Assembly: GCF_964204865.1 (NCBI RefSeq)
Contig: NC_135251.1
Span: 14,818,001 to 14,882,000 of the forward strand
DNA from: Styela clava
Lineage: Eukaryota
Direction: 5' to 3'
DNA: 64,000 bases
In this document: positions 6,652-64,000 of the stretch, piece after piece
Position numbering within the stretch: the stretch's first letter is position 1
How the letters are laid out: every line of letters starts with the position of its first letter
Position numbers and translations under genes: made by a program
Notes under the pieces: generated by a model
Seen by the model: the letters and a program-made list of their open reading frames with translations, nothing else
Databases searched by the model: none
Told to the model about the DNA's origin: nothing

Positions 6652-8236
6652 GTATGGTGGCCCATCGTTGTCACGCGTAAAATTTAAAAAAAAAATGAAA
6701 AAGCGAAAATAAAAAAATAGTTGTGAAAAAACATAAAAATAATTGNNNNNNNNNNNNNNNNNNNNNNNNNNNNNNNNNNNNNNNNNNNNNNNNNNNNNNN
6801 NNNNNNNNNNNNNNNNNNNNNNNNNNNNNNNNNNNNNNNNNNNNNNNNNNNNNNNNNNNNNNNNNNNNNNNNNTCAAAAGGTTGACAACGATGGTCCGCC
6901 TCGTGGCCCATCGTTGTCACGCGTTTTTATTATCAGAAAATTTGATGCTGCTTGGGACCAACGTTGTCAGGCCTAATCCTACACGCACAAATGTGTTTCC
7001 TGGGTTTCTAACTCACTACTGATTTTCATGAGCAATATTTAATAAATTGAACATGAAAATGTTCTATAAATTCTTCATGCTACAAGTTCAACCACAAGCA
7101 ATACAATTATAATAATGATAAGAGAATATAGAATTGAATACGAAAAATTGTTTTTACGTGTAGAAGGTAATTTAATTGGAAAATGCTGCTTAACTGCTCA
7201 GTTGTCTGGACACTCGTGCGATGCCGGTGCGGTACCGTCTGACCATGCAATCACTCATGAAAGAATGGGAGATACGGATAGTCTCGTAGAAAAAGACTAC
7301 TGAAACACTCTCTGCGCCTGCCCCATACCGTACAGCCGTAACGTACCGATCCAGACAAATGATAAATCGCCCTTGCTCAACCATTTATTTCAATTCATAC
7401 CTCGACTCACTATATTCTACTAGGATCGAGGTATGGATTGAAATAAATGGTTGAGCACGGGCGATTTATCACTTGTCTGGATCGGTACTGTACGGTATGG
7501 GGCAGGCGCAGAGAGTGTCTCAGTAGTCTATATTCTACGAGACTATCCGTATCTCCCATTCTCTCATGAGTGATTGCATGGCTACCGGTACGGTCAGACG
7601 CAGAGGGACTATAACTGACTACCGGTATTTGGTAAGACGGTACGGTACCGGCATCGCGAGTGTCCAGACAACTGAGTAGTTAAGCAGCATTCTCCAATTC
7701 AATTACCTTCTACACGTAAAAACAAATTTTCCGAATTTTCGTATTCAATTCTATATTCTCTTATCCTTATTATAAATATATTACGTCTTGTTGAACTTGT
7801 AGCATGGAGAATTTATAGAACATTTTCATATTGAATATTGCTCAAGAAAATCAGTAGTGAGTTGGAAACCCAGGGAACACATTTGTGCGCGTAGGATTAT
7901 GCCTGACAACGTTGGTCCCAAGCAGAAGCAAATTTTCTAAAAATAAAAACGCGTGACAACGATGGGCCACGAGGCGGACCATCGTTGTCAACCTTTTTAT
8001 TTTCTTTTGATTCAATTTTTTTTTTTTTTTTAATTTTTTTTTTTTCAAATTTTTTTTCCATTCTTTTTTTTTCGTTTTTATTTTCAATTTTTTTTTTTTT
8101 AATTTTAATTTTTTTTATCATTTTTTTTTTCAATTATTTTTATGTTTTTTCACAACTATTTTTTTATTTTCGGTTTTTTATTTTATTTTTTATTTTTATT
8201 TTCAATTTTACGCGTGACAACGATGGGCCACCATAC
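6652..8236. mobile_element. ~1.6-kb foldback (fully palindromic) element
   Basis: Arm 6652-~7405 is the reverse complement of ~7427-8236 (GTATGGTGGCCCATCGTTGTCACGCGTAAAA ... TTTTACGCGTGACAACGATGGGCCACCATAC), with a ~20-nt loop; TTCT flanks both ends (6648-6651, 8237-8240). Confidence 0.9.
6746..6873. other. Assembly gap (128 N)
   Basis: Run of N inside the A-rich part of the left foldback arm. Confidence 0.99.
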
Positions 8237-10185: not shown

Positions 10186-13100
10186 ATGGCATGCAAATCA
10201 ATGAAGGAAGAATTTTCTTTTAAAAAAATGGGATTTTCATGTAACGACAAAGAAAAAAGATCTTTTTACGTTTCCCAGGTAACGTTGTAATTTACAATAG
10301 TATTTTTGTTTAGCTTTTCATGTTTTACTAATGTAATAAAACAAATTGAAAATTTATGAGCTGGAATCGCAGAAATTATTTTTAAATCTGCACGGCATTG
10401 AAAATACTCGCCGTTTCGTTTTGAAAACTTGGCCAATGTGCATCTTGCATTTAGTCTTTAAACGCCTTTAATATATATTTAAAAAGCCAGTTAGGGTTTG
10501 AATTCCAGCGCAATCTACATCCCAAACTCGAACTGGATAATTACTTATTTTGGGGGGGGGGGGGGGATACTTTCTACAAAAGTTCTTTTTTGAAGAATTT
10601 CCTCCCTCTTAAGATTTGACGTTACCTATTGCAATGTCAGCGTGGAATCGTTTATACTTAAAACGATATTAACTAGTGCTTTTTTCGCAACAATATATTT
10701 AAATGCATAGCTGTTATCTGCCATCGGGTATTTCCAACTCCTGAGTCAAAGCTCATAAATTTGCTTTAATTAATCTATATTTAAAAATAAAAATCGATGG
10801 AATGAATTGAAAACAAATAAGTCGACAGCCAATCTCAACTAGCTGAAGTGTGATTGAACACGCATACTTAGCTTACAATCGGTAATCCACAGCGATTGGG
10901 ATTATTCGGATAGAATAATATTCTAGCTTACCGCTAATGATTAGCCATGTTCATGGTTCGAACTAACAACAAAATTTGTAATGAACATCGAAAACTACTG
11001 GAAATTCGTGTCTCCAATATTTATCATATTTCTATTGTCGAAAGAAAATTTGTATATTCGTGTAATTCAGACTTGACAATAGTTGTTGAAAATATGGTTG
11101 CTAGAATGCATTGTTTCTTATACAGAAATGTAATCGAATTGAGTCAAATAGCACAAATGATAAAATCTGGAGCGCTGTTGCAATATATTGATTTCATATG
11201 CAATCAACAATGATGCTCTTTTCTCTCGTTCACCAAAATTTGGTTTTATATGTCGATGTAACCAATGTATTTATATGTTACAGTGGGGACAAAATCGTGC
11301 AGTTTTCTTCATATATCGTCTGATGATTGCATTGTTATCACTTTCGTGGACCATAAGTTTCTACGTGTATTGGAGTATTCATTGTAAACGGCATGTCGCT
11401 AATGCATATCGATATATTACTTTATGGTCGGATTTCCTCAGAACAACATACTTTACGTCGGCCTTTGTGCTGTGTCTAGTGGGGCTGGCCAACGATAAAC
11501 GGAATATTGCTGAGCAAGGTAATTAAATGTAGGAATGAAAAGTATTTTGAAACATCGGGATGTCAATAGTTCATACCCAAAGTCACGTTCCATCGGTACT
11601 CCGGTACTCAGACAGCAAGAATTTATCTTAGTAGCAATCATTGGATTAACTTTTGCTAAAGTTTGCAAACATATTTCGCAACACTCACTTATCTTGAAAG
11701 ACATCGTGATTGTCACATATTGTATTCTAAAACAGTTCTTCAACTTTTTACTTCGTTTTATACCTTTTTCATTTCTTTTTTACTTCGTATACCCCACAAA
11801 TAATAAAGGTTATTTGATACTATAACGTAGTAAAGAGTTGTTTGGTAAAGTCATTACAGAAGTCTTTCTTTGATCCCAGGATATTACGTAGCCTGAATTA
11901 ACGAAAGACGTAGAAATTGACGTCGATTTTATGACTTTAGCTTGTATTCAGAATTTTCGAATAACCTACACTTAGCACTTTCTGTATATATCTCCGACAC
12001 TATTTTTTGTTGCGTGAATGGGGTCTACTCGCTCCCATAATTCACCTTGCAATTACAGTACTTGCGAAATAGTGAATTGCAATGTCGAACGTTAACTGCA
12101 TCTGTTTCGAAAACAAGAAAATGCCTGCAGAATATATTCGACGTCGAATATAGCTGGGAACTCTAGTACACCATTTGTTTTTGTATATACTCGGGATTTG
12201 ACTTGGTATACACTTGGGATACAGTATACCCGGTTCAATAACACTGGTATAGAACATCTCGGTATGGATGTTAATCCCCATGCCCGCCTCTGTATGTCAA
12301 AGGTTGTTAATGAACTGCCCTCTCTGTGAATATGTATTGCACTGATGCTTTAAAGTCAGTTGAATAAGCATCACGCTCATGCCGTATCACATATGATACG
12401 AATGCGTTTTCCCCTTCGAAAACCACTCCAATATGGTTTTAATTTTGTATATTATATTAAATTACGACAAAATATTTTCCCTCTTTGACAATATTCATCT
12501 GCGCAGGGCTTTTTATATTTTTTAGTTTTTTTGGTTCTTCAGCTCGCAAATTCACAATTCCCTATTGGTTGCTTTTTAGTGTACCTAATTGTTCGAAAGT
12601 AGAGATATGCTATATAGATGAACCACGCATGAACGGCTCTAATTCAGTGCTCGGTCGCGCATGCTTGAAAAAGTATTACTTGTCTTGTCGAAAAAATTAT
12701 ATCAGGAGACGCATCATCCACCAGTACGAACTATACGAAATACGTTTTGAGCAGACAACATGGTATTGTCTCTTGTATAGAAGAGGCTAATCCCCAAATA
12801 TCACGGTCGTGATTTTATCCTTGAATAATTAATTCCTGGATACAATACGTCGTACTACAGGTATGCATTAAAATGTACCGTTAAATAATGTTGAACCTAT
12901 AATTTTGTTTATCGGGTGACGGATGACTTGACATTATCATCGCTAACATATGAATTTAATTGTGAGCAGTTAAACTGCGTTGTAACATTATTTATTTGTT
13001 TTTGACTTTAGATTTTGTCAAATGGCTGCGAGGCATGGCGTGGTACCTCCACACAGTTTCTGTTCTGTCCAACTTTGCAGTTACAACATTTTATTGGACA

Positions 13101-13514
13101 TTTGTTGCACCTACTATGCCCGACGAAGAAGCATTCGGCATATTTAGTATACTGCTACATGCTTGCAACAGCGTTCTCATTATCTTAGACCTTGTCATCG
13201 TAGCATTCCCCGTACGCTTACTCCATTCCATATACGGCATGGCATTGGCGCTATTTTATGGCGTTTTTACTATTCTTCTATGGCGTGTCGGCGACACCTC
13301 GGCAGTATATGAGATTTTGGATTGGGAAGTAAATCCTGGAGTGGCCGCTGCTCTTATTCTGCTATCAGCTTTTGTTGGAAGCCCTCTGGCCCAATTATTG
13401 ACATTTGGGATATATATACTAAAAAATAAAGTTCGAAAACATATTCATAAATATTCAAGCACAGACGAAACAAATTCAATGATTGAAATAAAAACCGAGG
13501 AAGAACAAGCATGA
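10186..13514 (+). CDS. Protein rolling stone-like multi-pass membrane protein, copy 1; exons 10186-10278, 11284-11518, 13012-13514
   Basis: Spliced product has F(Y/V)xSQW, YITLWS, VTTFYW, HACNS, LDLxxxAFPVRLLHxxY and VYEILDW motifs of the rost / FAR-17a-AIG1-like family. Canonical, phase-compatible splice sites; several hydrophobic helices. Confidence 0.85.
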
Positions 13515-15197: not shown

Positions 15198-16598
15198 ATG
15201 GCCCATGGATGGTGCCGAAAAAATTTTTCATGCCGATCTTTCGGATTTTCATGTGACGACAAGGAATCAGAATCATTTTATGTGTCCCAGGCAAGTATAA
15301 TATAAATTATTTTATTTTAAGACGGAGTATTTGTAGCAAAAACATAATGTCAAACAAACATTTTTTGGTAAAAAAAGAACAAAGGTTCTGGATATTATAT
15401 ATCCAAGTATATATTAATCTCTTCCCAGCTTAATTTATTAGCAAATAAAATAAAATTTATACTTTGCAGTGGGGAAAAAATCGCGCTGCCTTTACAGTGT
15501 ACAGAGCTATAATGGCATTGAATTCCTTGGGATGGACTATTGCATATTACATATGGTATAGCAGTGTTCAACCATGGCAAATCACACACAGTTATTGGTT
15601 TCTGACGCCGTGGGCTGACTTTCTCCGAACAACGTATTTTATTGCCGTAGCGCTCTTGGTTGTAATCGGGATGCTGAACCAGTTATATATGGTGGAAGAA
15701 CAAGGTGAGACAACAAGAAAAATCAGACAATCTAAAAAAATATTTGATTGAAAAATTTGGTTCGACTTACTTACAGACTGATTCAGATTGAGAGAAGAAT
15801 AACATTTATTGTCTCTTGTTGGTTGTTAAACGTGACTACCTCCTGTATCTTGGCCAATTTAGTTATTGATCCCATATTAATTCTTTTTCCTTCATTTGTC
15901 TTTCTCCCGTGACCAAGGCCAAGATTACTTTTGATAGTTTTTTCAGCCTCATTTTGACTGTTGCATGATATGATTCTCAAATTAGAACAAATATGTAATA
16001 ACTTCCGAGTAGTCAAATATACAATAAATAATACTAGATAATATATTAGAAGGTTTGTGTATTTTATTGTCTAATTTTCATTTCCACAGGAGGCATCAAA
16101 TGGCTTCGTGGCATAACCTGGCTTTTCTTCACGCTTACGGTTGGACCTACTTTCGTGGTAACGATATTATTTTGGAGTTACGTGGCACCAGATCTAGATC
16201 CGGATATAGCATACAGTGTCATCAGCATTTTCCGACATGGAATCAGTTTTGCATTGCTTTTAATTGATTTGTTCGTCTCAGCATTTCCGGTACGAATTGC
16301 GCATGGCGTGTACATGATGGCGCTTGCTGCATTTTATGGCATTTTTACAATCATTTTATGGCGTGCAAAGGTTACTGACGCAGTGTATGGAATATTAGAC
16401 TGGGAAAAATATCCCGAACTTGCTTCCGGAATTATTGTTGCTGTAACTTTAATAGCAGCTCCTTGCATTCACTTGGCATTATTTTTGTTGTATCGTTTAC
16501 GAATGCATGTATACAATAGATATCACATGGAAGAATCGTCTTCGCACCATGCGGAATTGAAAACCTTGGATCAAGTACATGAAGAACAAAATTCGTGA
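15198..16598 (+). CDS. Protein rolling stone-like multi-pass membrane protein, copy 2; exons 15198-15290, 15470-15704, 16090-16598
   Basis: Tandem paralog with identical exon 1 (93 nt) and exon 2 (235 nt) lengths; motifs FYVSQW, FLTPWA, VTILFW, AFPVRIAH, VYGILDW; intron 1 donor is CAG|GCAAGT. Confidence 0.85.
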
Positions 16599-49200: not shown

Positions 49201-51617
49201 TAGTAATATGATACTTTAGTTATTTTTCTAGTTTTAAAACATTTTGGCACGAACCTTGTCTTAAAATCAGCAAGGATAAGACAATCGTGGGCTTTTATAG
49301 ACTTCGTGTTTTTATCTTCGATTCGACTCTGAAAAAAATGAATAAAAGAGAAAAATTCAAATCATGTGTTTTATTTAATGCTTTTTATATTAAGGGAAAA
49401 CTATTAATCATTTTAAAAATGTTGAATTTGGAATAAAGATCAGTGATATCTATCAGAATATTCCAGGGTATGCTGTTTAAGAGATTGGATCGAGTTTACA
49501 ACAGGTCGTTTAGACTGAGAAAGGTATAAATAAAATATTCCAGACAGGCTTGGCAAATTTTAACTAACAATGCCAATTGTGTATGTATCAAAATGTTGTA
49601 TTTTATTTTTATTAGTAATATCGTTATATTGGTATAAAATTTGATATTTATATAGTTTTCGTTTTTGTGAAATTTCATATGAAACGAGCATCGATGCATC
49701 TTTCAGAGTTATATATTGAATAGTTTAGTTGTATATTGAGAATTTATTGGACTACTATATATAATTCGCATATAGTTACACACTGCATTTATTAGGGGAA
49801 ATTACCAGTACAACATAATCTTTCCACCAAGTTTGTTTTTCAATCTAATATAAAATTGAATACAATTTTGCCTGTACATAATTGATCACGAATTCAAATC
49901 TGTATGATGATGACAAATAGTCGCCATCTAAATTAGTACGTTTAACCTAATATCAATTTATATTAACAAATAGGCTTAGTGAACTACAAGGTCAATTTTA
50001 ATATTAAAGTACATATATTTATGCAGCGTTATTTGAACATTGCTTTACGCATTGCTTGGGGCAAATAATGAAAATGACTGCTGCGGTAATCGACCAACGT
50101 AGCTAAACCTATAAAGCCGGTTTTCTATCGTTAGAACTTACTTTGAACCTCGTGTTTATATGACGAAACATGTTGTTATATTTTTATAAAAAAGTGAACG
50201 AACAGGAACCTTCGGAACAATATTCAGTTTGATTGTTTGAGAGAGCGTTTGAAGTTAGGTAAAAAAGTAGATTGGCGTATTGTAAAACGTTTTTGGATTC
50301 TGTAAAAAAAGAAAAAAACTACAAATATCCTGTAATTTATAAAATTTTGTAGACATTATTAAGCGCAGTTTTGTAATACATGCGTTATTTTGATCGCATG
50401 ATATAGTACGGCTTAAAATTCCATAGTATACCGCTGAAACTCTTTCGGAAACTGTTTTGAGCAGTTTTTAATTCCAATACTGAGTATTTGACTATAGATT
50501 TAGTAGGAAGATTGTTCTTCCATTATAGTTTAGAATTGATAAAAAGAAAAATCTATCTTAATTTGTACAACGAAATAATAAACTTCTGTCAAATTCAAAT
50601 GAAGCAAAGTTATTCATAATATGGTACATTAAATAAATATTGGAATACCGTCAGGTTATTTTACAATTTGTGGAAATTTTTATTTGTAATACGGTATGGG
50701 GATTTCACAAATATATTAGAAATATAATTTTAAAATCGTAGCGTATTTTTGCTTCATAAATAATTTTAATGTTCCAGAAACATATCAAAAGTATAATTAT
50801 TGATGCGTTTTTTATCTCTTTATTTTGAGTTAGAAAGTTTTACGTTGGAATTATTTCAAGTAAATTGTTTTCAACGTAAAGTATTAACCAACCGTACGTG
50901 GTATTTTCAATGTATGCGTTATCAATACTACATAAAAATACCGAATTCAACGCCAGACAGTGTCACAGTTGACGGATAGAAATTTGGCCTCACTATTTGC
51001 AAAATGTGACCTGACTTATTTATTGATTACCGATTTTGCTAATTTTTGGCATAAATATTTTTTATTTTTTTTTTCTCTCGAAGAAATTATCTATTTGAAT
51101 AAAATTGCACGCCAATATGTATATGATGTATGTACCTGCTGCAATCATGAAGTAGCAATGCATTTATGTTATCTAATAACACAGTGCGAGTTGACAGCCG
51201 CCCGATCCGTGTAATACCTCAATGAATGAGTTCTTTTTGCGTTTTCCCGTCGATAGGGCAAAAATTGAGAACAGTTTGTCGTTTAATTAATGTGTTTGAG
51301 AACTCATGTTGTGTATTTAAATGTCATTGTCTTGCAACCTTCTGAATTCAATGACCTTTATGAAGCTCAGTCATTCCATTTGACTTTTTGTATTTTTTTT
51401 CACACGTCTTTTAGATATAAAGTAGCCGCCACACCTGTACAAATAGTAAAGGCAGTGATTAGCCTGTAATTAGGATAAAATCACAAGCCATTTACCCAAT
51501 GTAGGCTAACTATTTCGTCAAAATAAATCGCACTAACTATTGAAGAAGAAAATCGCATCTTAACATTTTTGGGGAATACCCAGTACATCACATCGGGACA
51601 AGGACCACATCAGGAGT

Positions 51618-54600
51618 ATGTGGATTCGATGGGTGGCTCTAGTGACACTGACATTTGTCACATTGAGCAGGAAGACTGATGCATGCGTAACTCCTGAAAA
51701 AGATGTCAACTTTGATGATTTTGCGCTGAGGTACGTCATTATATTTGTCTCATACATTATAATAGATCCACTACCGTGTTTAATAAGAACTACTGGTTTG
51801 GCGGGTATAGAAAAATTCATTCGAGGCTCGTTGTTTGAAAAATCTCAATTATAAACTCATTAGACGCCAAAACCGTGGGAACAACGAAGGACAGTCGTCA
51901 ACTGCAGGATTTTATTTTCTTGGTTGTTGCTCTGTATATATAATTATCCACTAATCCTCATCGTGGTCTGCAATGTAACAAGAGAATTATGCTATACTTT
52001 CTCGTGTTATTCACCATGCGTCGGGCGGTGACAGTTCCAAGTCTAATTTTAAAGGTTTAGTAGACGCTGTAAACGAATACAATGCTAGGATATAGTAAAG
52101 GTTATTTAATGTGGTTTTTACGCCATCTTGTAAAAAACATCTTACACCTATACATTATTGATTTTAGCACAACAATCTTTTGAATGTAATTTGTTACATG
52201 CACATGTTTGTAAAATAAAACAATGTTATAATGATTGCGATAATTTTGCGTGCTAACAGCCAAGTATAAATGATTTAACGCCATGCTAGATGAGTTGGAC
52301 AAGTAATAAATGTTGGTCATTAGTTATGTCAATTTTCAACTAATATTTTATTATAAAGAAATGAGCACTTCCGTTTGGCAACCGGCGGAAATTTTGTTGT
52401 CACGATTATTTACCATGTTTTGTTTTATTGCAACGCTGATCAGATTCTAATTAGCCATTCACTGAAGAAAACAAACAAAAAGACGAATTAAAGTTATTAT
52501 CTATAATTGGAAGATATTCAAATTGTCGAACGAAATGAAAGACGTAGTACCGGTTTCGATGATCCGTTTTGTAATCAAAATTTGTTAAATTAATAGGAGT
52601 TTTATTATAATTCAAGCCAAATTTGAAAGTGAAGACTTATACAGTGACTCGTAGCCAGACGTGTGGCAACGATCATTGGCACACTTCTAAAAATGTAAAG
52701 CAAATCGAAAATTCAAACATAATACGAACGTATATCACATTACAATATTCTTCATCAGTTTGTATTAAATATAAACAAATCAACCTGAGATATGCGACGT
52801 CCAAACAACAGATGTTGACAATGAAGCCATCTAAAACATGTTACCTAAAATTTTCAATAGATTCTACTTACTAGGTACAAAGTGGATGCATTCACTAAAT
52901 TTATGTTGTTTGTAGACCGAAACCACTTATCTTTTTAAATGGTAGGGCAAATGCTTCCAAACGCTAAGTATTTTGAAATTAAAGATACCCTAAAAAGTTT
53001 CTCCTTTTTTTTTTAAATCTTTCTATAGGCGGCTTTGGCCTTTGACGATTTTTAAACAATGCACAAACTTGAAATAACCGAAATAATACAGCTTTCATGT
53101 AAAATGATATACTCAAGTTAAAAATGTACTAAGATAATAAGATTAGCAGTCTTTGCTATTGAATTCGTTACATCCTGTGTGGGAATCGGGAGTTGGCTAA
53201 TCACTAGATAAATCATCGCACGAACATAAGGTGTCCCGACAATCAAAAAATAAATGATCATAAACAGGGTGCTACTAATTTGATTGAAAGGGCCAAAATA
53301 TTCACGGTTTAGCACATAGATACACAATTTATCGGTTAAACTTTCAATAAATCATCCATTGAATAAATCATTGATAATTATGAACAAGTCATGATGCAAT
53401 ATTTTTGACTTGTACTTTTACAATTGCTAAAAATGCTCATTGAGTTATTTTTCGTATAACCGCATTTTCTATTGGAAGTACGGTTATAACTATATGCCAT
53501 TTTTTAATGAATAGAGCAAAAACATATTCCAGACAGAAGAAGAAGCTAGGGAGGTGGATAATTTAGGGGACAAAAACTCTCTCTCTTGATCCTCATATTT
53601 CCCACCAACAGAGCATATACACACGTTTCACCCTTTTCAGTGATTGTTGAGACTCTCAGTTCAAGTCAAGTCATTTACTTTTGTTATGCACTGAGCGTCA
53701 AAAATCACCTCCGGGCTTTTAGTAATATTGAAGTTATTTATATGAAAACACTATGATTAACCTTATGGTAATGCTATGTACAATATTATTTAGTCTTGAC
53801 AACTTAAACGACACAAACTAAATAATAGTCTGGTACAAGGCATGTCCATATAAATATACTATCTTAAAATTAAATGCGGTTATTCTGAACGGTTTTCTCA
53901 GGTTTTTAATTACTCGAACTTATTAGTCATCGGATGCCATTTGTAACCCAGCATATTAATTCTCTCCAATAATTGTCGGTTTCATTACCCCTAATATGGC
54001 CTTCCGCTACCGTCCATTGAAGTGCTTCCAAATCGGATATGGTATTTTAAATCATTTGTATCATTTCCAAATATTGAAACAATAATTAGGGCAATTTAGG
54101 TAATTTTACTATAATTATATATCAATACATAAAAGTTTTCAATTCTGGTGAGTCTGGCAAAATGCTTGCTATTTCTTACACAATTTATTATAAAATATTA
54201 GTAAATGATAAATAAATCACCCCAAAAATAATCATCAACATTTTTAAACCTTATTTTTTCTAGAGTAGACCCAAAATCGGCAGAAATGTAAAAAATGTAA
54301 TATTGTGACAGAGAATTGAAACCAGTCATTCATACTATTATGGATTCTTGAATATAATAGAATTGTTCGTGCCCATATCCATAGTCTAAATAAAAAATTT
54401 GAGAAAAAAAAAATTATATGATTCCATCCTGGAGAATCAATCGGGGGAAAACCATATTGTTTGGGCTAAAATCGAATTTTCACATATTCCTTATAAACTG
54501 TATACATTTTGAATTAAAACTAGTGGGTTTGATTATGTAATCGAGTTATTGTCAAATATTATCGTTCCACATTGCGTGGTTCACCGGGGAGAATTAACAA

Positions 54601-57600
54601 ATAATCCTAAATCACTTGCAATGTTGTGTCACGTCTAGACATCTTAAATAACCTGTGAAAATATATCGTATCTATTTCAGTATATTAAACCACAGACAAG
54701 CAGAAGCATGATGATATTTTAATTGAACGCGGGTAGAAAGTAATTTTAAATGTCACGTCCATGATAGTAATAGAACAATAGATAACACACTAGCTTTGGC
54801 TATTGATTAAGGTCATGGTCATGGCGTGTTTCGATGTAACGGTAAGCCTTGCCAATTTTTGAACCTATTATAAAAATACTGGTGATATGAAATTATTTTA
54901 ATGATAGCTTTAAAATAAAAATAACGTGAATCAAGTTAAATGTCACTGTCGAATTATCAGCATCCTGTTTTTGAAGTTGATATTTATTTATACAGGATAT
55001 TTTCGAAAATATATGTGACAAATAATTTAATATTTTCAATTAAGTTATACAATTTATGCTAGTCTCAATAGCTTGATTATGATAGTTACATAACCTCAAA
55101 TTTTCACAATTTAAAATAAATTACGATTTTTGTAAAAATGATCGATCGATTTTGTTGAGCCCTTTTTTTGTGAGTCGTTTCACTCTTCCTCTCCGAACAA
55201 GACTCTGTAGAAGCAGCGACCAATCAGAAGCAACCAACCAATAGTAGCTTCTCACAATTCGTTCTATATTAGTGCTGCTTGTATGAGGGCTTTGTTCTGA
55301 GCAAAAGACGTGAATAAATATTGTATTAAAAAAATAATTGATTGTGCATTTTGCAAAAGTGTGTCATTTCTAAACCATTTTTTTCAATGTATAGATTTTG
55401 AATACATTCAAATTATAGTTAATTTTATTTATAGTTTTAAAATGGGATAGAATGCCTTAATCAAGTGAATAAAATGTTGTGTAATCAATCATTTCCTTTT
55501 CAATATTCAAAGTTCGAGTTCAATTTTCTATTTTTATCAATCTTGTTTTCTTTCATCTAAATCTAAATCAACCTAAGGTTAAATGGGGACACTTTCGGTG
55601 CTAAGGTTAACAACGCAATTTTAAATGGTATATAATTATGAATCGTATGACATAATTAAAGTCGAAATTTAATTAGTCTTTCTATATTTATATTCATTAC
55701 AATTCGTGTTTGTCTTAACAGTATTTCCCCGATAAAGGAAACAACGACGTTGTTGCAATTCCTATATTCCTCTGCTAGCACTCCAGGGGTTTCATTCGAC
55801 TTTACTTACAAATATATCGTAGTCATTTATGCTTGCTTAAAGTGATATAACCAGTTTTGAAGTCAAGTGTGTTTATATCTCACTTTACTGTACGTAAATG
55901 CGATGCGTTTCATTGCATTGCTCCAGGCCATAAACTAGGATTGTGAACTATATCGTAGAGCAAAGTCTATAGCTTAGATTTCCGACAAAGCTGATATAAT
56001 ATAATTTATTTAAACCAACACTTGATAGGTTTTATATCATATAATTCACAGCCAAACTGAAATAGCAAAGTCAATTATGCATTCAATCAAACGAGTCTTT
56101 GGGAAAACTTAAAATTGTTTAACGATAGATGGCGCGTTTACGGCTTTTACTTGAAAACAATTTACATCTTCGACTAATTTCTTCCACATTCAGCCGAATA
56201 AACGATTTCTACATTTTTTGAAACGGTTTTTGAATGGGCCGTTTTATTCACAATCATAAATTAGTAAAGTATTTAATAAAATCATGGATTGATTTTGGTT
56301 GGTGCATCAAGTATTTGGAAACCGTTAGTTTCGTGTTAATCTATAGACCAAAACCAACGTTAAACTGGAATTAGAGAAGTCAGTCTTCCAGTCGTTGACC
56401 ATTTTTCTTTATCTGATCTTGTGTTGAGTTTCAGCTTATCCCATTTAATGCTATTTTTGTATAAACTGAACATTATACAATAGGTAATACGATTCGTGCT
56501 CACCAAAGTCGATAAATGTTATATCGAAAGTATCGACAGGAATGATCAACTTACTTTTGACCGCTCCATAATGTAAATTTTTCCCAATATCATCCAATCG
56601 ACTTAGATTTGATTTATTCTAGCTCAAACGTTTGCACATAAAGTGTAGTGAGTTTATCGCCAACTAGCATGCATTTACAATGCTCCAATTGATCGACAAA
56701 CGCCTAGTGACTATTGTTAAAAATGAGTTTTACGTTGTCTTTTTTTTTTCGTGATTATTTGCGTTTTATATATTTGTCGTTACAATTTGCATTGTTGACG
56801 TTGTGTTAACACATTTTTCTTTAAACATTTTTAGATCTGACATTGTTGTAGAAGGGGTTTTGGCAAGAAATGTTGTTAAGAAGAAACCAAAATTTAGTGC
56901 TACGTTTCGAGTCACTACGATTTTTTCTACAAAAGCAGGGAAGCTCAAATTGGGCAATTCTTTCGTGTGAGTTTTATAAATCTATATAGTATAGAAAAAT
57001 ATTTGATAGGTTAATGTATGATATTTATATTTGAAACCAATCTTTTTTGTTTACACTTGTATATACTTTAAGACATGATTTATTCATGATTTACCGAAAT
57101 TATATATAGAATGCTATATCCAGAAATATTTCTGTTGGTCTAAAATATTTTACGGAATTTCTCAATGGATCGACAGAAATGGCATACAAAATTTTCATCA
57201 CGCAAAATTTAATATTTGTTCAAATGCAATAAAAATTTTCAACCATAGGTTTAATTATATTTTTCTTATTTTCAAAAACAGAGTTGGCGACTTCGGTTCT
57301 GCGTCTTCGTGTCTAAAACCCAAGTTTGGCAAGAAATATGTATTTTTCTTGTCTCCAAGTACAGCACCTAGAATACGGGGTCGCCCCCGACGATTCGTCA
57401 ACCGCTATAACCCTGTCGGCTCTTCAAAAAGGAATCTGAAACTTTTTAAAAGTGTTCTGGAAGGTAGGTTGATTGGTTTTGCCGAGTTTTACAGTATACA
57501 AGTTTATACAATGTGATGTTAATGAATGTATTTTCACTAAACTATAATCTCATGTCTCTTGTTCAATATTCGATAACATGTAATGTAATAGCTGTTAATT

Positions 57601-60600
57601 TACGTATAACTACGTTTCAGGTACTTATGAAGGCGAAACGATATTGCGATCTGGATGTAAAAAGATGAGTAAGCCGGATAATGGAGCCGTCTCATGTTCT
57701 CCTGATAAAATGCGATGTGTTACCTCATGTAAAAAAGGATTTTTACTCAACGGCGGACCGAAGTTTAAAGTTTGCCAAACCACAACAGGACTGTGGTATC
57801 CGTTCAAATCAGTATCGTGTGTTCCTGAACCAACAACTACATCAACGACTTCTACTGATGAAATAATATTGGCATCAACACCACAATCTGCAATTTCCAA
57901 TATTAAAAATCCGTTCACTGATACAATAGCCAACAAGGCTACATCCAAAAAGAAGCCAGTAGCCAAAGCAAAGACTGGAAAGAAACGAATCGCAAATAGG
58001 AGAAAAACAAAGCGAGGAAAAAAGAACTCTGGAGGTAAAATGAAAACGGCACCGCGGAAAATTATAAGATTGAAATCTGCTGAAGGGGGAGGGACGACAT
58101 CTATCAGCAGAAGATATCCAAATTTGAAAGGTGCTGATGCACAGAAGGTACTCGTGGATAATCTCAATTCAGAACAAGAAACTTTATCAGGTAATATTCG
58201 TTGCACGTTTGACATCATTTTATCAGGGTGTCTCCAAAATGTCGTGTCCCACTTGTACTGCGTGTCCTACTTGTCCCACGTGTCCCACTGTACCACTTGT
58301 CCCATGTGTCAAGTGGGAAACGTGGTACAAGTGGGACGCGTGGTACACGTGATACAAGTGGTACAAGTGGGACACGTGGGACACGTGGGACACGTGGGAC
58401 AAGTGGGACACGACATTTTGGAGACACGGAATTTTATCATAAAATATTTTAATAGTGGTGAATTCGCAACCAAATGTGAAATAATTATATCAGGCTATTT
58501 CAGACTATTTTAATGATAGGAAACAAAGATAGAGGATTCAGTCGATATGCAGCAAAAAATGTATTTGATTGATGCATTTAGTAGGCCCACATGTAGCAAG
58601 AATAATCTAGTATATATCAATGTGAAATATGTAATTTTCAGATTCCCATGACACCGATTTGAGCATGTTCTCAAACGAAGAAGACAGTACAACTACAACT
58701 TTTGTTAGTTCAACAACTACAATACTCTCTCCTTCGACAACAGAACAAACTCCACCTCCAAGAAGATCAACACCAAGTACGCGGAAAATACCAATTATGC
58801 CAACCGATGAATCGGCTATACCAACAGTATCATCGACAATCTCATCATCACCTCTAACACCAACAGAAATTGAGATACCGCTATTTTTGTCTGAAGAACC
58901 TGATACATCACCCACAGAAAAAGGAGAATCGATTTTGACTTCTAAAGAACCTACAACAACGACTACAAAACCCGTCGCAGTGTCTGAGGAAACAGATAAA
59001 CCAGTTTTAACGACTGGTGTTATAGAACAATCAACGATAACAACAGCAAAAGTTGATTCAATTCCACAAACACCAAATATACCTACGACAAAATCAACTG
59101 TGATAGTTTCTAGTTCCGAAGTACCAATTACTTTAACAACGAATCGGTATGTGGAAACAGAAAATCGTAGTTTAATTTCTGAAGCACCAGATTCATTTGT
59201 GACGGAACCATCCGTAGAATCCAGAAAACCTAACGCAACTTTTGAAATAACAGATGCATTCACAACAGAACAAACCAGAGACACAGCAACTCCAGTCTTT
59301 ATACTTGAAAGCACGACTCCAGCTAAAACGACTGAAGACATCGAGGATCCTGTAACTATGCCTGAAACGGTAAATGCATCAGCGACAGGAGCAAGTATGA
59401 TAACTGACAAGCCAACATATTTCTCTGAAAGACAAAATACAACTACAACAATTCTAATAGATGAAACCGAAGCACCGACTTCTGCGTTTAAAGAGCCTGT
59501 CGAACTTACAAAAGAAACGGCGACAATAGTTTCAGTTACTAGAGAATCGGTGGAATACATAACAGAATCGAGCGCAAAAGCTAATGAGACAGTTTTTATT
59601 GATCCAAACACAACTTCATCGGAACCTATTGTCGACGCAAGTACAGATCCAGTTTCGGGAGTATCAGAGGTATATACAGTAGAGCCAAGCGCAAAACCTA
59701 ATGAGACAGTTTTTATTGATCCAAACGCCACCACAACGGAATCCTTTATCGAAAGTACAGAACCAGTTTCGATCAAATTGAACATATCCTCAACAGACTC
59801 CACTTTGGAGATCAGTGGCACATTGTCTACTATCGAAGATCCAGTCACGTCAGGAATAGAGATAGCAACTCAAACGGCAGAAATGGTTTTAATTTCTGGA
59901 AATATCTCAACAACAAAACCAGTAATGAATATTGATGAAACGTCGACAATGGTTGAAGAACGTGATATGGTCACTTCTAAATCGATGGTAGAATCAACAA
60001 AATCAGTTCCTATTTCTGAAGAATTTGAAACTTCAATAATGGTGACATCTAGTACAAAGACATTGGTTTCTGTAAATACAAGCACAACAAAACCGATAGA
60101 AGAGATTGAATTGTCGGTTCCAACATCTCTGGAACTGAATATATCTACGACGGAATCAACTCAACAAATTGAAACCATTACAAATGAACTTATAAAGGAA
60201 CTAAATATATCCGCAACAGAGACAATCATAACAACTATTTCGTATCAACCAGATCCCACTGCCGCGTCAAATAAGACGGACTCTATTTCTGAAGTACCAG
60301 TTACACCCACGACAGAAACTATAATAGTTTCAGACATATCAACAACGAGTCAAACCGAAGGACCTACTAAACCCATTTCGATTTATACAATACTAAATGG
60401 AACTGATCCAGACTCCACCACAGTAGAACAAACATTTGAGTCAACTGCTGCTCCAAATGAGACAGTTACACCCACGACAGAAACTATAATAGTTTCAGAC
60501 ATATCAACAACGAGTCAAACCGAAGGACCTACTAAACCCATTTCGATTTATACAATACTAAATGGAACTGATCCAGACTCCACCACAGTAGAACAAACAT

Positions 60601-63600
60601 TTGATCCAACTGCTGCTCCAAATGAGACAGATTCAATTTCTGAAGGACCGGTTACACCCGCCACAGAAATAATTTTAGATATAGATACGTCAACAACGGA
60701 TCAAACTGAAGGAACCACCAATCCCGTTTCAATTTCTACACTAGTAAATATAACTGACCCAATTACTGTCACAGTGGAACAAACATTCGATCCAACTGCT
60801 GCTCCAAATGAGACGGATTTGATTTCTAAAGGTCCGGTTACACCCGCTACAGAAATAATTTTAGTTTCAGATGCGTCAACATCGGGTCAAACTGAGGGAA
60901 CTACCAATCCCGTTTCAATTTCTACACGAGAAAATGTAACTGTCACAAGCACCGTCACAGTGGAAAAAACATTTGATTCAACTGCTGCTCCAAATGAGAC
61001 GGATTTGATTTCCAAAGGACCGGTTATACCTAGCACAGAAATTATTTTAATTTCAGATACGTCAACAACGGGTCAATCTGAAGGAACATCAATTTTCAAA
61101 ACTTACCCAAGCACCACCACAGCGGAACCAGCAGCTGCAACCGAACCGTCCACTGCGTACACGACGAAATCTACTGAAGAAACTCAGAAAACTACAACAA
61201 CCACACATCAGCTCACCTCGACTGAGGAGACAACTGTGAAACCAACATTATCAACCAGTCCACCAATTTTGTCAACAAAAGAACTGGACTCGACGATAAA
61301 ACCAAGCATTTTACCTGAAGCATCATCGTCGACGTCAACTGAAAGGCCTGTAACTACAAAAACAATAACTACGACAGCAAAATCAATTTCATCAACTAAA
61401 GAAACTGTTACGCCGACTACACTACTAACGACTGGATTGCCTGTTACGTCGCCAAAAGTTACGCTATCCAAGAAGCCGGTTTCTCCAACCAAGAAGCCGA
61501 CTTCAGTGTCAACTAAAAAGCCATTCGTCGTGTCTAAAAAACCATCACCTAAGAAACCAATTACACCAAGCAAACCCCCAAAAATTCCATCGAAGAAACC
61601 CGAGACGCCGGTTTCTCCAACCATGAAGCCGACTCCAGTGTCAACTAAAAAGCCATTTTTCGTGTCTAAAAAACCATCACCTAAGAAACCAATTACACCA
61701 AGCAAACCCCCAAAAATTCCATCGAAGAAACCCGAGACGCCGGTTTCTCCAACCATGAAGCCGACTCCAGTGTCAACTGAAAAGCCATTTGTCGTGTCTA
61801 AAAAACCATCACCTAAGAAACCAATTACACCAAGCAAACCCCCAAAAATTCCATCGAAGAAACCCAAGAAGCCGGTTTCTCCAACCAAGAAGCCGACTCC
61901 AGTGTCAACTAAAAATCCATTTGTCGTGTCTAAAAAACCATCACCTAAGAAACCAATTACACCAAGCAAACCCCCAAAAATTCCATCGAAGAAACCCGAG
62001 ACGCCGGTTTCTCCAACCATGAAGCCGACTCCAGTGTCAACTAAAAAGCCATTTGTCGCGTCTAAAAAACCATCACCTAAGAAACCAATTACACCAAGCA
62101 AACCCCCAAAAATTCCATCGAAGAAACCCGAGACGCCGGTTTCTCCAACCAAGAAGCCGACTCCAGGGTCAACTAAAAAGCCATTTGTCGTGTCTAAAAA
62201 ACCATCACCTAAGAAACCAATTACACCGAGCAAACCCCCAAAAATTCCATCGAAAAAACCCGAGACGCCGGTTTCTCCAACCATGAAGCCGACTCCAGTG
62301 TCAACTAAAAAGCCATTTGTCGCGTCTAAAAAACCATCACCTAAGAAACCAATTACACCAAGCAAACCCCCAAAAAGTCCATCGAAGAAACCCGAGACGC
62401 CGGTTTCTCCAACCAAGAAGCCGACTCCAGTGTCAATTATAAAGCCATTTGTCGTGTCTAAAAAACCATCACCTAAGAAACCAATTACACCGAGCAAACC
62501 CCCAAAAATTCCATCGAAGAAACCCATTTCTCCGGTTGAAAAACCTAGAAAACCAACAGAAAAGCCAACAAAAAAACCATTATTACCAAGGAAACCATTG
62601 AGAAAACCCGGCGCTGGCAAGAAACCTACATTACGAAGGAAACCTACTGGATCCAGACGAAAACCAGGCGTGGCTCCCAAAAAGCCAGCCACTCCGTCTA
62701 AAGCACCTGCAAAAAAGCCAACCGCTCCAACGAGAGGGCCTCTGAAAAAGCCTGTTACAGGGAAAAGACCTAATTTACGCAGAAGGAAACCATTAGGAGC
62801 TAGAAGGCGACCAGGCGTAGCTCCCAAGAAGCCCATCGGAACTATAAATAGGCCAACCCCAGTAAAACAAAAGCCTGGTGAAACTGCCAAAACACCTAAC
62901 GTTCTGATAAAACCAACTTCTGTGATTGAAAAGCCAGTAACAACAGCCACTGCGACAAAGGAACCAACAAAAGAAATAATTATACAGACCACAGAACCAC
63001 CTACGTCGCCAAAATTGTCTCCCACTACAACAAAAGCAACCGTATCAACAATTCAGCCTAGCACAACCACAAAAGAATTGAAAAAAACAACCGTTGCAAC
63101 CACTATTCCTATTGTGGCGACAAAGATACCAACTGAAACCAAAAAACCAACCATTCCGAGACAAGCTCCTGCAAAAAAGCCAACCGCTCCAAAACGAGGG
63201 CCACTGAAAAAGCCTCTCACAGGAAAGAGACCCAATTTACGCAGAAGGAAACCATTGGGAACTAGAAGACGACCAGGTGTGGCTCCTAAAAAGCCTACCG
63301 GCACTACGAAGCCAGTTCTAACCCGACAAAAGCCTAGTGAAACTGTCAAAAAACCTGAAGTTCCGACGAAACCAACTACTCCAATTCAAAAGTCAACAAC
63401 AACTGCGACAAAGGAACCAACGACAGAAACAATTTTACAAACCACAGAACCACCTACTTCGCCAAAATCAACGACATCATCGACACAGAGATCTGTTTCT
63501 GTCACGGAGAAACCAGCAGTCACTAAAAAAACAGTCACGCCTAGTAAAGCACCTACAAAAAAACCGGTAGTTACAAGAAGGGGACCCCTAAAAAAACCTG

Positions 63601-64000
63601 TTTGGGGAAAAAGGCCAGCTTTATCTAGAAAGAAACCTATTGCTGGTATTAAGAAACCGGGAGAAATTGCAAAGAAGCCCGTGGGTACCAGAAAGAAGCC
63701 AGGTATGGCCAAGAAAAAACCGGGTCTATCTGTCAAGAAGCCAGCGGGTGCCCAAAAGAAACCGTTTGTTGGTAAGAAAAAGCCTGGAATCCAAGGTAAA
63801 AAGCCTGGTTTGGCTCGCAAGAAACCATTACTCGCCAGAAAGAAGCCTGGCTTTGGTAAAAAACAACCTGTTAAAAAGCCGCCAATAAAACGACGACCTG
63901 TACCAACTAAAAAGCCTATTAAAAAACCTTTGCCCGGAAAAGGTAAATTGGGATTAAAACCTGTTGCCAAAGGACGAACCGGACCTAAGCCTGTAGTCGG
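51618..64000 (+). CDS. Large secreted NtA-domain + Sushi-like + mucin-like protein, 3' incomplete; exons 51618-51730, 56835-56966, 57282-57463, 57621-58190, 58642->64000
   Basis: Signal peptide MWIRWVALVTLTFVTLSRKTDA|C. Exons 1-3 splice in frame to C...RSDIVVEG...FSATFRVTTIF...VVGDFGSASSC...GKKYVFFLSP, resembling the agrin NtA / neuregulin N-terminal fold. Exon 4 has CKKMSKPDNGAVSC...C...CKKGFLLNG...C...GLW...C (CCP-like). In the last exon I found no stop in the 58644 frame over ~5.3 kb; it is T/S/P/K-rich. Confidence 0.85.
58226..58430. mobile_element. Palindromic MITE with 9-bp internal repeats and 9-bp TSD (Mutator-like) in a mucin-gene intron
   Basis: GTGTCTCCAAAATGTCGTGTCCCAC / GTGGGACACGACATTTTGGAGACAC arms; (GGGACACGT)n subrepeats; ATTTTATCA at 58217-58225 and 58431-58439. 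Confidence 0.85.
60300..61090 (+). repeat. Coding tandem repeat, ~186-bp (62-aa) acidic Thr-rich unit, ~4.5 copies (first unit 165 bp)
   Basis: GTTAYACC unit starts at 60300, 60465, 60651, 60837, 61023; unit VTPxTExIxxSDxSTTxQTEGxTxPxSIxTxxNxT...TVEQTFDPTAAPNET. Confidence 0.9.
61476..62531 (+). repeat. Coding tandem repeat, 132-bp (44-aa) Lys/Pro-rich unit, 8 copies
   Basis: CCGGTTTCTCC recurs at 61476, 61608, 61740, 61872, 62004, 62136, 62268, 62400; unit PVSPTKKPTPVSTKKPFVVSKKPSPKKPITPSKPPKIPSKKPET. Confidence 0.97.
62703..63690 (+). repeat. Coding dispersed repeat APxKKPxxxxRGPLKKPxxGKRPxLxRxKP, 3 copies separated by Thr-rich spacers
   Basis: Copies start near 62703, 63165 and 63549. 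Confidence 0.85.

Follow-up and report, generated by a model that had tools for sequence, protein, structure and literature searches.

A giant Styela clava mosaic protein with a neuregulin-2-type head, a charge-blocked mucin exon and a probably inactive cellulase domain

The window (the whole 64,000-nucleotide stretch of Styela clava DNA analysed here) ends inside an exceptionally long uninterrupted reading frame, and the question it raises is what kind of protein this frame belongs to and what such a protein may do. The initial annotation, made from the letters alone, had proposed a spliced gene for a giant secreted protein, in which a signal peptide and a small head spread over three exons are followed by a six-cysteine CCP-like module, a Lys/Arg-rich linker and a charge-blocked mucin/polybasic KKP exon of more than 1780 codons. 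All of these parts were recovered on closer analysis, and it was the identity given to the head that had to be replaced.

Gene model and transcript support

Positions 51618-64000 make up the 5' two-thirds of a S. clava gene on the + strand (as are all features below) and hold its first five exons; the product is RefSeq XP_039258678.1 (P0001), a 3032-aa protein automatically named "mucin-2-like". The start codon is the first ATG downstream of an in-frame stop at 51561, and opens the coding part of exon 1 (51618..51730), which carries the signal peptide and the first 15 residues of the head and closes on a phase 2 donor (AG/gtacgt). It is followed by exon 2 (56835..56966; first half of the head), exon 3 (57282..57463; second half, with Cys92 and a basic RIRGRPRR loop), exon 4 (57621..58190; 570 nt, symmetric phase 1-1), which encodes the Sushi-like module and the basic linker, and the in-window part of exon 5 (58642..64000), an open frame matching the RefSeq protein at 100%. 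Introns 1-4 are without exception of the GT..AG type, their phases (2, 2, 1 and 1) are mutually compatible, and the five exons, once joined and translated, yield residues 1-2118 of XP_039258678.1 free of stops.

RNA-type contigs from two studies (runs X3 and X5) join exons 1-2-3-4 by skipping introns 1-3 exactly as modelled (51730 to 56835, 56966 to 57282 and 57463 to 57621), which covers both junctions flanking exon 2 and the acceptor of exon 4, and a contig of run X1 shows the last two of these skips (56966 to 57282 and 57463 to 57621). None of the intron 1-3 skips is present in the DNA run X7. The RNA-type contigs extend 1470 and 2188 letters beyond 57689 and, if collinear, that of run X5 would extend into the mucin exon even were intron 4 retained. 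The RefSeq model, rather than read alignment, supplies the junction between exons 4 and 5 and likewise the connection of exon 5 to the GH9 exons; a search for transcript-derived fragments that used codons 1-600 of exon 5 as query gave none. The gene is real and expressed.

From 58635 the frame runs without a stop for 1788 codons to the end of the window (1785 of them full exon 5 codons), and at a GC content of 38-45% an open frame of more than 1780 codons cannot be due to chance. Exon 5 continues to about 64799 (window-equivalent), which brings it to ~2050 codons and ~6.2 kb in all, and tblastn of the protein against L002 placed residues 1787-2385 at L002:3-1799. The remainder of exon 5 and at least eight further exons lie downstream of the window.

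Domain architecture from the head to the cellulase fold

The signal peptide (residues 1-22; 51618..51683) was read directly from the sequence: a basic n-region and a core of 12 hydrophobic residues come first, and T-D-A stands ahead of the predicted cut, so that Cys23 would be the first mature residue. The head that follows (~120 aa over exons 1-3) had been taken for the laminin-binding NtA domain of agrin, with neuregulin/Vein-type relatedness mentioned only in passing, and it is the latter that the profiles bear out. On the whole protein, Pfam NRG2_N (PF25518) scores 43.4 bits against a gathering cut-off of 27 (E 4e-11; residues 36-112 on model positions 2-79 of 90), and it is retrieved by exon 3 alone (E 9.7e-5) and by exon 2 alone (E 0.04, next to Vein_beta-barrel, PF24700, at E 0.15). 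Smith-Waterman comparison with the heads of the two Styela neuregulin-type loci, both with Ig and EGF downstream, gave z values of 7.2 (L003) and 7.5 (L004), and 0 of 500 shuffles reached the score. By these comparisons the head is of the NRG2_N (neuregulin-2 N-terminal) type, for which we know of no partner, and a Cys23-Cys92 disulfide within it is probable.

The NtA assignment fared differently. Pfam NtA (PF03146) matched neither any exon at E<=10 nor the whole protein at E<=1, whereas the same profile does detect the three NtA exons of Styela agrin; similarity of the head to that agrin NtA stays at chance level (Smith-Waterman z 0.3, a score matched or exceeded by 187 of 500 shuffles), and hhalign assigns the pair a probability of 0.2%. 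A TIMP/NTR/NtA-like (OB-like) fold is hinted at only, by the nearest named Atlas clusters of exon 3 (NTR, TIMP and NtA, at low scores of 0.78-0.82) and by a weak NTR match of a paralogous head (E 0.09). Fold searches with a proxy model of a paralogous head (pLDDT 51) returned nothing, and the profile of A1 found nothing relevant among PDB sequences. When exon 3 was searched by phmmer against 1.84 billion representatives, one real match was obtained (P0005, a 100-aa ENA fragment on a 514-nt contig from another organism, 56% identical); a second match, to a bacterial repeat protein, was rejected as spurious.

The six-Cys module of exon 4 (residues 155-209; 57656..57820) has its cysteines at residues 155, 168, 175, 179, 194 and 209, four of which (Cys155, 179, 194 and 209) are those of the Sushi consensus, with 168/175 as an extra pair. 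It also bears three further hallmarks of Sushi domains: it starts with C-x-x-P-x-NG, G-(F/Y)-x-L-x-G follows Cys2, and a Trp (GLWYP) lies between Cys3 and Cys4. Pfam Sushi (PF00084) aligns over its full model (1-56 of 56), yet at 12.6 bits against a cut-off of 20.7 (E 0.19), while Sushi clusters account for 26 of 30 matches in the Atlas feature search (score 0.91). The AF2 single-sequence model of exon 4 alone was too poor to use (pLDDT 51). The rest of the exon (57821..58190) encodes a short Thr-rich stretch and then the Lys/Arg-rich linker, with a net charge of about +18 over residues 213-333.

Within the window, the frame that contains exon 5 (1788 residues) is composed of 18% T, 15% P, 13% K and 11% S, with 9 Tyr and no Cys, and falls into two blocks of opposite charge. 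The acidic, Ser/Thr-rich and O-glycosylatable mucin block (58650..61289; ~870 aa) has a net charge of about -92 and 22 N-glycosylation sequons, and includes imperfect 165/186-bp (55/62-aa) tandem repeats at 60298..61087; one 55-aa unit is missing from the RefSeq isoforms X2 and X3. The following Lys/Pro(/Arg)-rich polycation (61290..64000 in the window; ~1000 aa), interspersed with Thr-rich stretches, reaches a net charge of about +230 up to residue 2290, and contains eight tandem 132-bp (44-aa) copies of a KKP repeat that are 96% alike (61471..62525).

The initial annotation had called for the model to be extended beyond 64000. C-terminal domains are indeed found there, in the order CBM2-like module, Arg/Ala/Gly/Pro repeat and GH9 domain, and the follistatin, LamG, Ig and EGF domains of the agrin and neuregulin scenarios are absent; NRG2_N and GH9 are the only Pfam domains on the whole protein. 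Exon 5 stays open as far as residue 2385, two-thirds of the way into the CBM2-like module, which places mucin and CBM2-like module in one exon. The match of this module to CBM_2 (PF00553) covers only model positions 5-40 and is below threshold (16.4 bits against a cut-off of 24, E 0.011). The GH9 domain (PF00759; residues 2574-2997) scores 354.9 bits, and aligns to 1ks8 with E 9e-104. Catalysis in GH9 enzymes depends on the Asp pair of the DAGD base motif and on an acid Glu. Where 1ks8 and intact paralog copies have DAGD, the aligned sequence here reads SGAG, so both Asp are absent (the Glu of NEVA is kept), and judged from these residues the domain is probably inactive and non-cutting.

Kinship, proposed function and rival readings

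Four of these modules recur in a Styela clava paralog (P0008, LOC120343078), organised as signal peptide, Sushi, two CBM2-like modules, three GH9 copies and a KKP tail. The two proteins share the same six-Cys Sushi variant (39% identical to the N-terminal module of the paralog, E 4e-4), the same CBM2-like module (31% identity, E 6.6e-6), GH9 domains at ~40% identity, and the 9-mer KKPSPKKPI, common to the polycation and to the Lys/Pro tail of the paralog. They differ in that the paralog has neither NRG2_N head nor mucin, confines KKP to a short C-terminal tail and keeps its last GH9 copy catalytically intact, whereas XP_039258678.1 has a linker of ~2000 residues and a single GH9 lacking both Asp. 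Animal endoglucanases that combine CBM2 and GH9 exist (e.g., abalone HdEG66). Since Sushi, CBM2-like, GH9 and KKP recur in a multi-GH9 paralog, we reason that XP_039258678.1 is a derived, probably non-cutting member of this family, set apart by its neuregulin-type head and by the enormous growth of its linker. A secreted Sushi-CBM2like-GH9 cellulase may have been the ancestor, which would then have acquired the exons of the head, lengthened its linker to a single ~6.2-kb exon and given up catalysis. Searches with the CBM2-like+GH9 region among proteins of 1668-5306 aa retrieved only Styela paralogs and bacterial cellulases, and neither these nor the exon 3 phmmer search found a full-length ortholog outside Styela.

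We found no named family with the same domain order, in line with the initial annotation, and no paper on the protein or its accessions. With neuregulin-2 and Drosophila Vein it shares the NRG2_N head (the Styela neuregulin-type heads likewise begin with Cys after the signal peptide), but in neuregulins Ig, EGF and a transmembrane segment follow (Styela L003 and the C14 gene), and here Sushi, mucin, polycation, CBM2-like module and GH9. Agrin resembles it as a giant secreted matrix protein with a small N-terminal beta-rich head (possibly of a common TIMP-like superfold) and Ser/Thr-rich glycosylated stretches, but differs in its follistatin, EGF, SEA and LamG domains and in the NtA sequence and profile. 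By Pfam, the head is followed by none of the follistatin, LamG, Ig and EGF domains, which makes the protein neither agrin nor a neuregulin, in agreement with the initial annotation. A long Pro/Thr/Ser domain with tandem repeats in a single giant exon recalls gel-forming mucins such as MUC2; however, Pfam finds no VWD, C8, TIL or cystine-knot (CK) domain and half of the central exon is polycation rather than PTS domain, so homology to MUC2 was rejected, and composition is all that the RefSeq name reflects. Glycosidases that have lost catalysis, such as the GH18 chi-lectins (YKL-40, insect IDGFs), serve to bind glycans. They are comparable in keeping a hydrolase fold without its catalytic residues for glycan binding or signalling, and differ in that here the fold is a GH9 (alpha/alpha)6 barrel, the putative ligand is cellulose, and the domain is one module of a giant mosaic.

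The reading we favour, and to which we would give an even chance, is that of a secreted, non-cutting, cellulose-holding organiser of the tunic matrix. The initial suggestion of an "adhesive, tunic or mucus" protein is upheld as far as a secreted mosaic is concerned, and the CBM2-like and GH9 modules narrow it towards cellulose; the tunic as location comes solely from these cellulose-related modules. The CBM2-like module and the dead GH9 cleft would grip cellulose chains, and the stiff polycation would bind polyanions, i.e. sulfated tunic glycans and/or an acidic mucin block (its own or that of a neighbour), with electrostatic cross-links or a coacervate-like packing as the result. Water retention may fall to the glycosylated acidic block, and the neuregulin-type head and the Sushi module could dock the opposite end to a cell-surface or matrix partner. 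A low galactan content has been reported for the tunic of S. clava (PMC7540406), and this makes a sulfated-glycan partner less likely. A bolder version, which we regard as rather unlikely, would make it the first protein identified as a physical link between the epidermal surface of an animal and the cellulose that this animal makes: the pseudo-cellulase and CBM2-like module would clamp microfibrils (nascent or mature), the polycation rod of ~1000 residues and the acidic mucin would set their spacing and bundling electrostatically, and the head, here freed from the Ig-EGF ligand setting in which it usually occurs, would dock to a receptor on the cell surface or in the matrix.

Other settings can be imagined for the same modules. 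The protein could belong to the stomach, the intestine or the pharyngeal mucus net, as a mucin that forms gels and binds cellulose, holding algal cell-wall material or keeping active multi-GH9 cellulases near it; a digestive role is what animal GH9 genes are usually held to have (PMC10334666), its nearest relatives are secreted multi-GH9 proteins with an intact last copy, the paralogs P0007 and P0008 may themselves be gut enzymes, and the architecture is mucin-like. We consider this somewhat unlikely, as known gut mucins feature neither so long a polycation nor a catalytic domain that is dead, and gel-forming domains are missing here; that three S. clava runs of a 2023 study (tissue coded) hold almost none of the gene's words says little. 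Lys-rich polycations and polyanions drive the coacervate cements of other marine animals. This precedent, and the presence of both charge blocks within one chain, would suit an underwater adhesive or cement of larval papillae or adult holdfast that hardens through complex coacervation of its own two blocks and is tied to the tunic by its cellulose-binding end; the absence of any Tyr/DOPA-rich, phosphoserine-rich or Cys-rich curing motif (see the Tyr and Cys counts above) makes it an improbable one.

Less probable still is an agrin-like proteoglycan whose true NtA head would sit on the laminin gamma-1 coiled coil and tether the mucin to the basal lamina. The idea is invited by two NtA-like features, a Cys immediately behind the signal peptide and another in a G-x-x-x-x-C loop that precedes a hydrophobic FFL strand, together with the Atlas and NTR similarities of the heads; against it speak the failed NtA comparisons, the downstream domains, and a separate, true Styela agrin NtA on another contig (C10) with other intron positions than the NRG2_N-type head gene. 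Finally, low-complexity exons invite model errors and the junctions downstream of exon 5 rest on the RefSeq model, so that a head-Sushi-mucin gene might have been misjoined to a downstream CBM2-like+GH9 gene; we hold such a chimera to be very improbable, given the same Sushi, CBM2-like, GH9 and KKP module set in the paralog P0008 and the shared exon of mucin and CBM2-like module.

Implications for the tunicate cellulose matrix

Tunicates are, to our knowledge, the only animals that make cellulose, and we know of essentially no named proteins that bind or arrange it outside the cell. The synthase CesA and a GH6 gene have already been studied (PMC10986139, PMC10334666). The gene described here provides a concrete candidate for an organiser of an animal cellulose matrix: its product starts with a neuregulin-type head and, across a charge-patterned spacer of ~2000 residues, ends with a CBM2-like module and a probably non-cutting cellulase fold. 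Its NRG2_N head occurs apart from any EGF ligand, which is relevant to the role of a poorly understood domain, and the gene offers one instance of a multi-GH9 cellulase family that may have turned structural through linker expansion and catalytic loss. As a natural, putatively cellulose-binding polycation/mucin block copolymer, it may also be of practical interest for biomaterials. Should the coupling of epidermis to cellulose prove true, NRG2_N heads would be general matrix-docking modules, and the assembly of the tunic would have a protein template.

Gene structure and transcript support

The window DNA is AT-rich and eukaryotic, and carries an open frame of 1788 codons that extends from position 58635 to the window end (abundant in Thr, Pro, Lys and Ser, and free of Cys). 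The initial annotation had proposed a spliced, secreted reading frame with small exons leading into one of more than 1780 codons, and this architecture was recovered. Exon 1 (51618-51730, its ATG being the first downstream of an in-frame stop at 51561), exon 2 (56835-56966), exon 3 (57282-57463) and exon 4 (57621-58190; symmetric, phase 1-1) are connected with each other and with exon 5 by GT-AG introns of compatible phases, while exon 5 itself (58642 onwards) continues for ~799 bases beyond the window end and totals ~2050 codons. A database search with exon 5 returned a single protein, P0001 (3032 aa, 100% identical), which clusters with RefSeq XP_039258678.1-680.1, the Styela clava "mucin-2-like" isoforms X1-X3. 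The RefSeq name is automatic, and a literature search found no publications on the protein. The N-terminus of P0001 equals the exon model exactly, and the translation of the five joined exons corresponds, stop-free, to residues 1-2118 (the joined translation served solely for this identity check, and homology searches used unjoined sequence).

Words of exon 5 were present at 79-87% in five RNA-like assembly runs (50-80 Mb of contigs, two studies); four larger runs, all from one sample, resemble DNA. We mapped run contigs to window 51690-57689. The contigs of runs X3 and X5 (run labels, distinct from the isoform names) jump from 51730 to 56835, from 56966 to 57282 and from 57463 to 57621, with GT..AG ends, thus skipping introns 1-3 exactly as predicted. 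Those of run X1 carry the second and third of these skips, and those of the DNA run X7 are collinear with the genome. On account of these exon joints, X3 and X5 come from spliced RNA. The junction between exons 4 and 5 is taken from the RefSeq model; contigs extend 1470 and 2188 letters past 57689, which brings the mucin exon within reach if they are collinear. Intron 4 harbours a palindromic minisatellite (58243-58412), in which ~7.7 copies of CGTGTCCCA run straight into ~11 copies of the reverse-complement unit, GTGGGACAC, an arrangement that could form a long hairpin in pre-mRNA or DNA.

Elsewhere in the window we observed a P450-like open stretch (1179-1577), 128 consecutive N (6746-6873; assembly gap or masked) and, on the + strand, two similar 182-codon open stretches (12966-13511 and 16050-16595) that resemble multi-pass membrane proteins and apparently form a tandem gene pair.

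The N-terminal head and the Sushi module

The head (exons 1-3) had been named an NtA domain. Searched per exon, it gave weak Pfam matches to NRG2_N (E 0.04 and 9.7e-5) and Vein_beta-barrel (E 0.15), and on the whole of P0001 the NRG2_N model scored 43.4 bits (cut-off 27) over residues 36-112. Neither the single exons nor the whole protein matched Pfam NtA, a model that does find the true agrin NtA of Styela on contig C10, where it spans three exons, and also one NtA-like exon on contig C6. The latter (L009:1408-2124; G000:C6, about 12841900-12842620; E 6.6e-4) is split by a ~110-residue Lys/Arg-rich insert and marks a second NtA-like gene in addition to agrin.

Two further NRG2_N heads were found in the Styela genome, both in neuregulin-type genes on the minus strand. 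On contig C18 (L003, G000:C18:16868038-16871286, locus 574-1707) a single 378-aa open frame holds most of the head and runs on into Ig and EGF domains and a transmembrane segment. On contig C14 (L010+L011, G000:C14:17432001-17452000) a signal-peptide exon ending just past a Cys is followed by a single-exon head, Ig exons and an EGF exon. In Smith-Waterman comparisons (500 shuffles) the head reached z values of 7.2 and 7.5 against these two heads and 0.3 against agrin NtA, and hhalign gave the five-row head alignment a probability of 0.2% against the middle NtA exon of agrin. The Pfam scores, z values and hhalign result thus place the head in the NRG2_N family and not in NtA.

A common TIMP/NTR/NtA superfold for NRG2_N heads is weakly suggested. 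The head has NtA-like traits (one Cys immediately behind the signal peptide, another ahead of a hydrophobic FFL strand), the C14 head shows a weak Pfam NTR match (E 0.09), and exon 3 has NTR, TIMP and NtA clusters, all of one Pfam clan, as its Atlas feature neighbours, at low scores (0.78-0.82). The structure predicted for a proxy, a paralogous head, was of low confidence.

The six-Cys, CCP-like module noticed earlier held up. Residues 155-209 contain the four consensus Sushi Cys, one additional Cys pair and the landmarks Pro/Asn-Gly, Gly-Phe-x-Leu-x-Gly and Trp; the Pfam Sushi alignment is end-to-end yet sub-threshold (12.6 bits, E 0.19), 26 of 30 Atlas feature matches are Sushi clusters (score 0.91, 184 shared features), and the N-terminal module of the Styela paralog P0008 shares 39% identity with it (E 4e-4). 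By these sequence criteria we accept it as a divergent Sushi/CCP module. Its exon belongs to the symmetric phase 1-1 class that shuffled extracellular modules typically have. Downstream of it, a short Thr-rich segment leads into a basic linker (net +18).

The giant exon and the modules beyond the window

Exon 5 opens with an acidic block (residues ~334-1215; net -92, Ser+Thr 35%, 22 N-glycosylation sequons) that includes imperfect 55/62-aa repeats (60298-61087). From residue ~1216 the charge reverses: eight 44-aa KKP repeats (61471-62525), 96% alike at the DNA level, precede Pro/Lys/Arg-rich units separated by Thr-rich stretches, and the polycation attains a net charge of about +230 up to residue 2290. 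Of the 31 residues that differ between P0001 and RefSeq X1, 27 fall in exon 5, and residues 1-280 show no difference. Exactly one 55-aa unit of the 165-bp tandem repeat, residues 886-940 (window 60298-60630), is missing from isoforms X2 and X3; variation in repeat number or an artefact of alignment seems likelier here than regulated splicing.

Exon 5 ends within a Cys-flanked module (about residues 2296-2420) with a weak, sub-threshold CBM_2 match (E 0.011), 31% identical (E 6.6e-6) to a module occurring twice in P0008. Behind this module, an Arg/Ala/Gly/Pro repeat leads to a GH9 domain that is complete (Pfam, 355 bits; E 9e-104 to termite endoglucanase 1ks8). Aligned with 1ks8 and the Styela paralogs, the DAGD motif of this domain reads SGAG, and the NEVA Glu is retained. 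The two Asp of DAGD form the GH9 catalytic base pair; since both are missing, hydrolysis should be lost or crippled.

Origin of the modules and proposed function

A region-limited search recovered two long Styela GH9 proteins, P0007 (LOC120329657; four GH9 copies) and P0008 (LOC120343078), encoded on contigs other than that of the studied gene. Behind its signal peptide, P0008 carries the six-Cys Sushi variant of P0001, a pair of CBM2-like modules and GH9 in three copies, and its Lys/Pro tail has the 9-mer KKPSPKKPI in common with the 44-aa repeat of exon 5. The NRG2_N head is absent from both. In each, only the last GH9 copy keeps both DAGD and the catalytic Glu intact; the upstream copies show N, G, A or S within DAGD, and their Glu is replaced by Q or H, so that pseudo-GH9 domains are widespread in this family. 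Given the modules common to P0008, four of the six module types of P0001 derive from a lineage-specific family of secreted cellulases, and the head derives from the neuregulin family. Outside Styela, the searches yielded one fragment, P0005, of 100 aa, which is encoded by an ENA contig of 514 nt and shares 56% identity with exon 3.

P0001 is thus a secreted, expressed mosaic that has its cellulose-related modules near the C-terminus and its neuregulin-type head and Sushi module near the N-terminus. The initial annotation was right about the kind of protein, so that its observation is confirmed and its interpretation partly supported; it erred on the head family and missed the decisive C-terminal modules. 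We infer a structural organiser of the cellulose tunic. In this model, the dead GH9 cleft and CBM2-like module would grip cellulose, and polyanions, either sulfated glycans of the tunic or acidic mucin blocks, would be bound by the polycation. Hydration and spacing of the matrix would fall to the acidic block, and the head and Sushi module would attach to a partner on the cell surface or in the matrix. Which polyanion serves as partner is uncertain, since galactan is reported to be low in S. clava (PMC7540406). As animal GH9 genes are usually digestive (PMC10334666), a role in the gut or feeding mucus is the main rival to a tunic organiser, and an adhesive role is a further one. P0001 belongs to known kinds (modular matrix protein, pseudo-glycosidase); its novelty lies in how the modules are combined, in a linker of ~2000 residues and in the lost catalytic base.
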